This document shows, in pieces, positions 3,401-6,400 of a DNA stretch of 64,000 nucleotides (position 1 is its first letter; the number at the start of each line of letters is the position of its first letter). Source of the DNA: Thalia democratica. Taxonomy: Eukaryota. Location of the stretch: contig OZ241830.1 of assembly GCA_965202585.1 (NCBI GenBank), positions 73,222,001-73,286,000 on the forward strand, in the 5' to 3' direction. The notes beneath the pieces were generated by a model. It was not told the DNA's origin and did no database searches. It was given only the letters and a program-made list of their open reading frames with translations. The position numbers were made by a program, and so were the translations under genes.

Positions 3401-6400
3401 TACCTAATACAGGGTTTCCCAAAGTGGGCTTCTTGGGGGACATGACAGATACTTAGGGGGTCACGAGCAGCAAAGGGGTAAAAGAGGAGGGGGGCATGAG
3501 CATTAAAGGAGCCACAGGGGCCATGAAGTCATAATTAGAAACTTACACTAAATATTCTCGAGTTGCAGATGAAGAGCAAAAAAATAAAGATCTTAGGTGT
3601 TTTTGATGGTAGTTTTTATGTAATCTTGTTGAAGGGGGCCATGGCTTTTTAAATTTCTTTAAAGGGGGCCATTTGCAAAAAATTTTGGGAAACCCTGATG
3701 TAATACATACATTTTTTTAATACAATTAAACCCAACAGTGCTGTTCACGTACGGAGGAAACAGCGAAGGGGCTCCTTGCGTGTTCCCCTTCAACTTCCTC
3801 GACAAACAGTACGACGGATGCACCACCGAGGGCAGGAGTGACGGGTACAGCTGGTGCGCGACCTCTAGCGACTACGACAAGGACGGAAAGTGGGCTTTCT
3901 GCCCCGAAAGAGGTTAGAAAACTGTTCAGCACGTATGATAACTAATGTATATTTTGTATTTATTTATTATAAATTTATATTTTTAGGCATATTGTTTTAA
4001 ACTGAGAATAGTAAAACAAACAAAAAAGTACAAACAAGTTTTAAACATTTACTTCTTACTTTTAGTCTGAAAAGTCTCAAATTAAAAAAAAAAATTTAAT
4101 ATGTTTCTGACCATTAAGTAAAACAAAAAAAACATGCTCTGATGCGTACGATGAGAACAAATCAAATTGTTTATTTTTATCTTTATTTCAAAAATATACC
4201 ACAGTAAGTGATACTCTTGGTGGAAACGCGACGTGGGCACCATGCACATATACCTTAATATTCATTTCCAATAAATATGTAATATAAACAAATTACGTAA
4301 GTACATCATTATTACATCACAGTAAGTGGTACAAGGGGAGGCAACGCGAAGGGAGCGGCATGCGTGTTTCCCTTCATATTCAACGGACAGGAGTACACAG
4401 ACTGCACGTTGGCCGGTAGACAGGACGGTATGGCGTGGTGCGGAACCACTTCCAATTATGACGTGTTAGTCGTTGTTTTATTTAGCTTCCAATTATGACG
4501 TGTTTGTTTGATATTGTTTGTTAATAAGATGTTCTAGCTTAATTATAGAAATTTTCCAAATTAAAGTTTTTGCATTCTACTTTTTCGTTTTTGTGAATTA
4601 ACAAAATTGGAGTCTTTTACTAATTTTTAAAACAACAATCTACCTTTTTATCACATTTTTTATAAACATTAATTGCTTTAACCTATCTTAGCAAGAGCTT
4701 TTTCGTTCTAAACTTTATTTGACGTATTGGCAAGTAACAATAATCAATTTAATCAACGCAATTTTTTTCGAACAAATTACGGTCACATTGACGGAAAATA
4801 TGGATTTTGCGAGAGCAACGGATACTCATTGCTGATAGTTGCAGCTCACCAGTTCGGACACACATTGGGACTCGGTCACTCCAGAGATGAAAGGGCCCTT
4901 ATGTACCCCAGGTTTTAAATTAAAAAAGTATCTAATAAGTTTTCTTTGCTATCTAATAAAGTTTTTGAACTGGGTTTCTTTTGCCTCTCATACAATAAAG
5001 AAGGGTGTTTAATAAAACTTAATTGAAAGTAAACAAACTTTAGTTGAAGTTGTCACACAACAAGTTTCCATATAAACTTATTCAAAAAAGTTTATTTAAT
5101 TCTTCTTCAGTTGTCAATTTTTATATCTTTTGCTAACTTTTTTAAAAGCTTCAAAAACAAAGCAAATAGACAACTGCATAAAATCAAAAACCCAGTTACT
5201 CGTTCATCGACAACTTCCAACTGCCGAACGATGACGTCAGAGGAGCCCGCCAAATTTACGGGAGTAGAACTTCCGCTCTACCGCCTCTGGTGTTGGAACA
5301 GTGTGGCGGGAAACTGAACGAGAAGAACAAAACGTTTGTGACGCGTGAGTTGATTGAAGGATATTTGTTTAGTTTTAAAAATACTGTGAGGACTAACGAA
5401 AAGTTTTCACTTTTTTGATAAGATTGCACTGCATTTTATAAAACATTTCAAGCTGTCGTTCTGACTTAGTGCGTCTAAACTATCATCAACAAGATATTTA
5501 ACAGTAATATATTTTTTTGCTAAAAAGTTATTCTTTTTAATAAATGAACTACAACTAAAGTTTACTTTAATTTATTATAAGATTGTTGTTTTTAGTTTTA
5601 CATTTCTAAGTCATTATTTAAAATTTAGGCTGCTTCGTGTTTACTAAACTATCAAAATGATATTTCCATTAGTTTAAAACTTTTTATATACTATTTAGGT
5701 TTTAAGCAAAAAATTAAACTTTTCAACTGAAATTTAATACAGCATTAGTTTCCAGTCTTCAGAGTAGTTTCAACGAATGTTTGTAACATTTTATAACTCA
5801 ACACGATTATAGCAGGTGGAGATAAGGACGATGATATGGAAACTGGTGCGAGCAGTCAGTTTGACACAATTTGCGATATTGACCACGTGGACGCCATGCT
5901 CATCCTCGGTAACGAAATATTCGTTTTGAAGGTCAGTTAAAGTTTTATTTAAAGTAATAAATTAAAACTAAGTCGTGATTTCCGGACCAGCCGATTAAAT
6001 GTGAAACAACAAATAATAACTAGTAAAGTTATAAGCTTTAATGCTTTAATTTAAGTCTGCATTTATTCTTTTTAAGTTAGGGTAATAAAATCTACTTTAA
6101 AAACAGTTCAATAAACTTAATTATTTTACTTTTATTATTATTTGACTATCAATTATTATACTATTATTGCTTAATAAATTATTTTGGTTTTTTTGTAGGT
6201 TTAATGAGTTAAAGTTAAACTAAGTGATAGTAAAAACTTTAACAAATTGTTTACTAATATTTTAAGCTAAGTGTGTTAAAACGGGCTGTAAGGAGTTTAT
6301 TTTATTCAAAAAACAAGACTTTTTAAATTTCTGGATTACTTTAATGAGAAAACACAACATGATGCTCTATTTTTACTAAAAAAACTATCAAAGCTTGTTT

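Follow-up and report, generated by a model that had tools for sequence, protein, structure and literature searches.

Gene structure of the gelatinase pair

A 64,000-nt stretch of the Thalia democratica genome (OZ241830.1; hereinafter referred to as the window) was analyzed for a pair of gelatinase genes, copy A and copy B. The analysis centered on exon 9 of copy A, which encodes the zinc site of the protease: in this exon a Gln codon stands where the catalytic Glu is expected, and the intron in front of it ends in AT where the homologous intron of copy B ends in AG.

The first 18 kb of the window contained the two genes, which were copies of one gene arranged tail to tail. Copy B was located on the reverse strand (18278-10768), and its model was built by joining open frames at GT/AG sites such that the phase was continuous. 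Copy A was located on the forward strand and was modeled by mapping each exon of copy B onto it, which placed exons 4-16 at 470-8551 and exons 1-3 upstream of the window. A gene finder that maximized open reading frame over-predicted exons and was dropped in favor of this anchored model. Both genes consisted of 16 exons and 822 codons in a single open frame, the exon lengths were equal pairwise, and the deduced proteins were 94% identical. When copy A was spliced like copy B, its 2469 nt contained neither a stop codon nor a frameshift; all but one of its 30 splice sites were GT or AG.

The domain order was the same in both deduced proteins: signal peptide, N-terminal extension, propeptide with a cysteine switch, catalytic domain with three fibronectin type II (FN2) inserts, and hemopexin domain. 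Exon 1 (465 nt, 155 codons) was found at window positions -2211 to -1747 on the forward strand in copy A and at 17814-18278 on the reverse strand in copy B. It encoded the signal peptide and, over ~130 aa, an extension that was basic and rich in proline and for which no Pfam match was obtained. The G+C content of exon 1 was 56%, with a third-position G+C content (GC3) of 0.74, while that of the genome was 27%. GC3 of the genes was 0.635 in copy A and 0.656 in copy B.

Assignment to the gelatinase family

Pfam family PF00413 (Peptidase_M10) was matched by exons 4, 5, and 9 (E = 4e-8 to 8e-12), including exon 9 of copy A (E = 4.2e-11). The cysteine switch, which follows the pattern PRCGxPD, was present as PRCGVPD on exon 3 of both copies. 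The three FN2 modules were encoded by exons 6, 7, and 8, the last of them (FN2-3) continuing into exon 9; Pfam fn2 was matched by exons 6 and 8 (E = 2e-16 to 3e-16), and exon 7 matched FN2 proteins in the library search. Pfam Hemopexin was matched by exon 13 (E = 6e-5) and weakly by exon 12, and the cysteines of exons 11 and 16 aligned with those of the hemopexin Cys-Cys pair in the outgroups. The Met-turn ALMYP was present in both copies. The zinc motif HExxHxxGxxH, with its catalytic Glu, was complete in copy B; in copy A (4847-4879) the three His were kept and the Glu was lost. The best PDB matches of exon 9 were human MMP-2 and MMP-9, and the top match was proMMP-2 of entry 1EAK, a laboratory E-to-Q mutant.

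The closest full-length proteins were tunicate gelatinases of Phallusia (49% identity), Clavelina (50%), Ciona (47-52%), and Styela (46%). Those of Phallusia, Styela, Clavelina, and Ciona intestinalis were of comparable length (758-827 aa). Ciona has a single gene of the gelatinase type, MMPe, which is the sole orthologue of vertebrate MMP2/7/9/20 (PMC1867822). In the genome of T. democratica, only copies A and B were of this type. Ciona MMPe and the gelatinases of Phallusia, Clavelina, and Styela share the domain order of copies A and B, including the long N-terminal extension and an LPPLxLE(K/Q)CGG linker; unlike these relatives, T. democratica has an inverted gene pair, one copy of which carries HQFGH. 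A variant of the full zinc motif with a residue other than E was found in none of the 382 fetched proteins. Further, no orthologue of copy A was found, and every relative found had E at the corresponding position (515). Profile searches with exon peptides (windows of 317-1008 aa and 94-298 aa) returned nothing above 73% identity and no transcript-derived protein of the species.

Exon 9 of copy A and its splice sites

Exon 8 of copy A (4323-4464, forward strand), mapped from copy B, encoded FN2-3 without its last strand and ended in ...NYD followed by the two bases GT. In accordance with this, the Pfam fn2 match on exon 8 ended at position 34 of the 42 of the profile (run on exon 8 of copy B, the protein of copy A being identical), and the fourth cysteine of FN2-3 was encoded by exon 9. 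Intron 8 (4465-4788, 324 nt) started with the donor GTTAGT. Exon 9 (4789-4911, 123 nt) encoded the FN2-3 tail DGKYGFC, followed by the zinc motif on the active-site helix and by the Met-turn; its first base completes a codon, which is followed by 40 codons and two further bases. Exon 10 (YSFIDNF...) was located at 5196-5344. The homologous exon 9 of copy B (14081-14203, reverse strand) encoded HEFGH and was flanked by the acceptor TTTTCAG and the donor GAG/GTAAGA (here and below, a slash within a site marks the splice junction).

The positions at which the acceptor AG of exon 9 is expected in copy A (4787-4788) read AT, with the C at -3 kept. The acceptor contexts were ...GGTCACAT/TGACGG in copy A and ...AATTTTCAG/TGACGG in copy B. 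Of the 30 acceptors in the gene pair, 26 were CAG (exon 9 of copy B included) and three were TAG, exon 9 of copy A being the sole exception. The sequence 5' of the acceptor in copy A was collinear with copy B, where the acceptor region is present twice and both of its copies end in AG. Judged from this alignment, the acceptor lesion is a single G-to-T change at 4788, the last base of intron 8. To score the sites, an acceptor matrix was made from the 28 other acceptors, whose own scores were 4 to 16 bits in training and, when each was left out, 0.3 to 14 bits. The acceptor of exon 9 scored 0.1 bits in copy A as it is, 6.9 bits with G at 4788, and 4.8 bits in copy B.

The donor of exon 9 in copy A, CCCCAG/GTTTTA (intron sequence from 4912, with TAA at 4916-4918), scored 4.0 bits. 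Presumed working donors of the two genes, each left out of the matrix, scored from about -5 to 12 bits and included GTTTGT, GTTTAT, GTATTT, and GTACAG; this donor therefore shows no sign of a defect. The original prediction, made from the letters of the window, had described both splice sites of the exon as decayed. The letters it gave, AT for AG at the acceptor and GTTTTA at the donor, were read directly in copies A and B and were correct, but the description does not fit them, as the acceptor is one base away from a 6.9-bit site and the donor lies within the range of the others. Intron 8 was also considered as a U12-type or AT-AC intron. This was ruled out by eye, because the donor GTTAGTCG is unlike the U12 consensus.

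Exon 9 differed between the two copies at 18 nucleotides, of which 15 were synonymous and three were not (D504N, E515Q, and D523G). At the catalytic site, the CAG codon at 4850-4852 replaces the catalytic Glu by Gln, giving HQFGH in copy A versus HEFGH in copy B. The GGT codon at 4874-4876, which is derived in copy A, gives D523G within the zinc motif.

The AT at 4787-4788 was confirmed in two sequencing runs, X1 and X2. They come from one sample and are possibly the assembly's own; the kind of run is not recorded, and each contained ~84% of the words of 400-8600, introns counted. No other run was returned for this stretch. In X1, a contig of 632 nt covered 4584-5215 with zero mismatches at a depth of 46.5, which equaled the adjacent single-copy depth, and in X2 the same interval was spanned by two perfect contigs. 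An AG at 4787-4788, which had been named in advance as the read that would speak against the lesion, was not seen; the contigs of both runs showed AT. The contig letters deviating at 4399 and 5241 were those of copy B and came from stretches shared by the two copies. Since the unitig was unbroken, the sample was homozygous. Assembly error and heterozygosity at 4788 were therefore ruled out for the sequenced sample, on the exact contigs, the single-copy depth, and the unbroken unitig.

Predicted transcripts of copy A

The consequences of the lost acceptor were predicted from the DNA. Skipping of exon 9 would join 4464 to 5196 in frame (...NYDV-YSFID...) and remove 41 aa. The original prediction had called the exon a symmetric cassette of 123 nt whose skipping preserves the frame. 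Symmetry and frame were borne out; usable flanking sites, which a cassette also has, were not, the acceptor being AT. It had further stated that skipping deletes exactly the three zinc-binding His and the Met-turn. These would indeed be lost, but so would the fourth cysteine of FN2-3. For the same reason, namely that DGKYGFC of FN2-3 is encoded by exon 9, its statement that two of the outcomes keep the FN2 domains was wrong for the skipped form.

Several AG dinucleotides could replace the lost acceptor. An upstream AAG (4732-4734) would start the exon at 4735 and add 18 stop-free codons (4735-4788), as had been proposed, although its score was poor (-8.1). The 54-nt extension had an intron-like G+C content of 26% (hand count) and aligned to the intron of copy B about as well as the flanking intron did, and it has therefore not long been coding. 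Downstream, the first two AGs past the lost acceptor lay within GAGAG (4812-4815) and scored -10.0 (4813/4814) and -8.6 (4815/4816). Splicing at 4813/4814 would be in frame only together with an alternative donor, GAC/GTGTTA, which was read from the sequence. Splicing at 4815/4816, after the second AG, would remove nine aa (DGKYGFCES), and this form would share the FN2-3 defect of the skipped form. The top in-frame alternative was an internal CAG (4882-4884, 2.1 bits); with the exon starting at 4885 (4884/4885), 32 aa including the three zinc-binding His would be lost and the Met-turn kept. Retention of intron 8 would lead to a stop at 4496-4498, and failure of the exon 9 donor would lead by read-through to the TAA at 4916-4918. 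The latter stop had been predicted correctly. The earlier list of outcomes thus held for those it contained, but it was incomplete, as 4815/4816, 4884/4885, and intron 8 retention were missing from it.

Most likely, the transcript either lacks exon 9 or is spliced at a weak cryptic AG. The E-to-Q change foreseen for the form that keeps exon 9 would be present as E515Q in all such isoforms, and the skipped form would lack the zinc site and the Met-turn in addition to the FN2-3 cysteine. Every possible product of copy A is thus predicted to be catalytically crippled or inactive.

Environmental sequences were also searched. The exact pattern of the exon 8 end had no match in JGI metagenome contigs. 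A 24-mer of the HQFGH region of copy A had one JGI match (L013, Ga0190265_10003470:10358-10381), which was rejected as a chance match because it lay on a bacterial contig of 61% G+C with no other similarity. Single 24-mers are able to match by chance in the JGI metagenome collection.

Selection, polarity, and possible gene conversion

The pairwise ratio of non-synonymous to synonymous divergence (dN/dS) between copies A and B was 0.106 overall, 0.03 in exon 9, and ~0.06 in the unconverted exons, which is not the pattern of neutral divergence. Synonymous divergence (dS) varied among exons from 0.06 to ~2. It was 0.06-0.18 in the near-identical exons 7, 8, 10, and 12, and ~1 or more in the strongly diverged exons 2, 9, 13, and 14, in which the pooled proportions of synonymous and non-synonymous differences (pS and pN) were 0.57 and 0.06, respectively. 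Exon 13 contained 15 synonymous and no non-synonymous differences. For exon 9, neutrality was rejected (p = 3.7e-8 for at most three non-synonymous ones among the 18 differences). The claim of the original prediction that the exon had been under protein-level selection, drawn from 15 synonymous differences out of 18, is thereby supported. With ~97 non-synonymous sites and at most three changes, and with the branch measured by synonymous divergence, the time that exon 9 of copy A has evolved neutrally would be, as a rough bound, no more than 0.03-0.08 substitutions per site, or less than ~15% of the A branch.

To polarize the differences, copies A and B were aligned with seven tunicate gelatinases. 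Position 515 was E in all seven outgroups and in copy B (all HEFGH), and position 523 was D in six of the seven. Twenty replacements between the copies could be polarized; 16 were derived in copy A and four in copy B (p = 0.012). Exon 9, with its 41 codons, accounted for three of the 16 (p = 0.04). The derived changes of copy A at otherwise invariant residues were N183S, E515Q, and F622L, and those at nearly invariant residues were D523G and R715K. Outside exon 9, the exons of the catalytic domain contained one conservative change (E307D). As is characteristic of a pseudoenzyme, the catalytic residue was replaced (E515Q) and the fold-determining residues were conserved. The 16:4 split corresponds to a dN/dS of roughly 0.2 on the A branch, and copy A appears to have been under looser yet clearly purifying selection.

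Identity between the copies was a mosaic (3700-5960 compared with 13080-15390). Exons 7, 8, and 10 were 96-100% identical, as were ~100 nt of intron 8, whereas exon 9 was 85% identical and the adjacent introns 50-80%. Such a pattern would be expected from gene conversion in patches, or from strong constraint on synonymous sites. Because gene conversion may have acted on exons 7, 8, and 10, the argument for selection rests mainly on the diverged exons.

Origin of intron 8

Intron 8, which is located at 14204-14618 in copy B, sets the zinc-site exon apart as an in-frame unit of its own. Five further genomic sequences of tunicate type were compared, and in all of them a single uninterrupted open frame to ALMYP encoded both FN2-3 and the zinc site. 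This comparison was made on DNA for a 52-kb ENA contig (L005, 10223-10480) and a Tara Oceans scaffold (L006, 46-315), and on open reading frames alone for P0273, P0274, and P0277. On the Tara Oceans scaffold, the flanking sites of this frame (tttag/ and AAG/gtaggc) matched the acceptor of exon 8 and the donor of exon 9 in T. democratica. No relative found had intron 8, and a gain in the lineage of T. democratica is therefore probable, although the relatives may have lost it independently. Its origin as a transposon or introner was ruled out, the introns of copies A and B being the only copies in the genome.

Remnants of the two flanking exon ends were also present in intron 8. In both copies, the final 18 bases of exon 8 together with the donor recurred 37 nt downstream (4450-4467 and 4487-4504 in copy A; 14633-14616 and 14596-14579 in copy B). 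At the other end, 84 nt present only in copy B (14204-14287, reverse strand) represented a tandem duplication of the acceptor region. They consisted of three parts: a decayed copy of the start of exon 9 (38 bases, 14287-14250, interrupted in frame by a TAA), an AT-rich filler of 24 nt, and the acceptor region now used. The three versions of the 38-mer were nearly equidistant (5, 5, and 6 differences), and the duplication in copy B is accordingly of about the same age as the divergence of the exon 9 block between the two copies.

Other features of the window

Intron 6 was 2138 nt long in copy A and 366 nt in copy B. About 0.9 kb of this intron in copy A (2096-3048) was 90-98% identical to 20016-20633, beyond the 5' end of copy B, and this block is probably a repeat or a mobile-element insertion. 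Further along the window, two similar exons on the reverse strand (31753-31983 and 63548-63778) resembled, by eye, a mitochondrial carrier of the ADP/ATP-carrier type (...ITYPMDFARTRL...GLYFG...). They suggest a second duplicated gene pair, ~32 kb apart. In addition, minisatellite-like arrays were present at 28294-28642 and 57037-57249, where both strands carried long, repetitive open frames composed of MIISN and PITSN units.

Discussion

The history that best accounts for the two genes would be as follows. Copy B would be the normal enzyme gene, and copy A would have been protein-coding for most of its existence under looser constraint. In the lineage of copy A, the catalytic Glu would have changed to Gln (E515Q) and the nearly invariant Asp of the zinc motif to Gly (D523G), giving a protein predicted to fold and to bind zinc and substrate but to cleave hardly or not at all. 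The G-to-T change at 4788 would have come later and removed the acceptor of the zinc-site exon. The lesion is probably recent, because exon 9 shows no neutral decay. We consider it about an even chance that copy A is such a long-maintained, catalytically crippled gene with a recent splice lesion, now processed by exon skipping or cryptic splicing.

Several points weigh against this account. It draws on DNA for whatever it says about expression, about inclusion of exon 9, and about when the lesion arose. No run recorded as RNA contained even 1/20 of the words of the 8.2-kb stretch of copy A (400-8600); if the searched index includes RNA runs of this animal, copy A is weakly expressed or silent there. 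Because a single individual was sequenced, the T at 4788 might be private to that animal or a polymorphism. E515Q cannot be dated by pairwise comparison. The main caveat on the argument from selection, however, is gene conversion, which is suggested by the mosaic and is able to keep a dead copy looking intact.

This caveat leads to the view that copy A is a silent or non-functional pseudogene kept tidy by conversion from copy B, with E515Q, D523G, and the lost acceptor as the first visible lesions in a block that was not refreshed. Exons 7, 8, and 10 and ~100 nt of intron 8, at 96-100% identity to copy B between introns of 50-80%, are what such a process would leave behind. Derived replacements are four times as numerous in copy A as in copy B, GC3 is slightly lower in copy A (0.635 versus 0.656), its exons were found in no RNA run, and an essential splice signal is lesioned (AG to AT at 4787-4788). 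The exons that conversion has not touched (dS ~1) are nevertheless strongly constrained, with 15 synonymous against no non-synonymous differences in exon 13 and 15 against three in exon 9. No stop or frameshift has accumulated in 2469 nt, 29 of 30 splice sites are intact, and a long-dead copy in a genome of 27% G+C would have lost a GC3 of 0.64. We regard death of the gene under cover of conversion as quite unlikely.

The same constraint on exon 9 (15 versus three), together with its intact three His, Met-turn, and helix, could instead mean that the exon is still included in the transcript, via the AAG ending at 4734, the GAGAG/C site at 4815, or an acceptor without AG, and that a stable E515Q gelatinase which binds or traps its substrate is being maintained. 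Exon 9 is unconverted between near-identical blocks, which fits selection keeping copy A distinct from copy B; three in-frame alternative acceptors are present; and human proMMP-2 with the E-to-Q mutation could be crystallized (1EAK) and is thus able to fold. However, scores are poor (-8.1 and -8.6 bits) for those in-frame alternatives in which the zinc site is kept. The 54-nt extension, at 26% G+C, has diverged from copy B like an intron, and FN2-3 would be short of its fourth cysteine in the form shortened by nine aa. YAG stands at each of the 29 other acceptors in the gene pair, and the RNA search gave no support. Continued inclusion is accordingly a serious possibility but an improbable one. 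Very improbable, by comparison, is a regulated alternative cassette with adaptively weak sites that switches between a zinc-site form and a binding form consisting of FN2 and hemopexin domains. The symmetric 123-nt exon, which can be skipped in frame, would suit such a switch, but without an AG acceptor ordinary inclusion is impossible and there is nothing to regulate. In addition, skipping breaks FN2-3, the homologous exon of copy B has ordinary sites, and the cassette owes its existence to a lineage-specific intron.

A bolder proposal can be set beside these readings. Copy A might be a natural substrate-trap gelatinase, in which the E-to-Q pseudoenzyme is kept by selection, the zinc-site block is shielded from conversion by the active twin, and the exon is included without an AG; or it might encode a secreted collagen- or gelatin-binding protein that lacks exon 9. 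On the present sequence evidence, we hold this to be rather unlikely.

Elements of the preferred account, a crippled gene with a recent splice lesion, have counterparts in known systems. The laboratory mutants E404Q and E404A of human proMMP-2 (1EAK and 1CK7) share the motif with copy A and, in 1EAK, the very same Glu-to-Gln change; unlike these engineered proteins, copy A carries a natural change that is accompanied by D523G and a splice lesion. Pseudoproteases such as the iRhoms and the ADAMs that lack HExxH show that a protease fold can stay under selection after loss of catalytic residues, whereas copy A is known here from DNA alone. In matrilysin, the E-to-Q change lowers kcat/Km several hundred-fold but not to zero. 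Mutations of the 3' splice-site AG are a familiar cause of exon skipping and cryptic-site use, and copy A likewise has AG changed to AT at the last base of the intron, in an otherwise normal acceptor. Unlike in the textbook cases, the change has occurred in a paralogue of a wild animal, where it is at least homozygous and may be fixed. To our knowledge, no natural dead gelatinase has been described, and none was found among the best 12 of 258 literature matches.

The locus is a small case of intron evolution, in which intron 8 carries leftover copies of both exon ends and is missing from the relatives found. If copy A is expressed, it would be the natural counterpart of the E-to-Q gelatinase mutants that serve laboratories as inactive controls, and a rare case of an MMP paralogue that is catalytically dead and kept beside an active twin. 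Non-cutting roles, such as matrix binding or competition with the active enzyme, could then be addressed with it. If it is not expressed, the gene would provide a clean snapshot of early gene death, with one catalytic substitution, one changed splice base, and an undecayed frame. Should copy A prove to be a substrate trap or a binding protein lacking exon 9, it would be the first natural dead gelatinase, arisen on an exon that was made by a lineage-specific intron gain.

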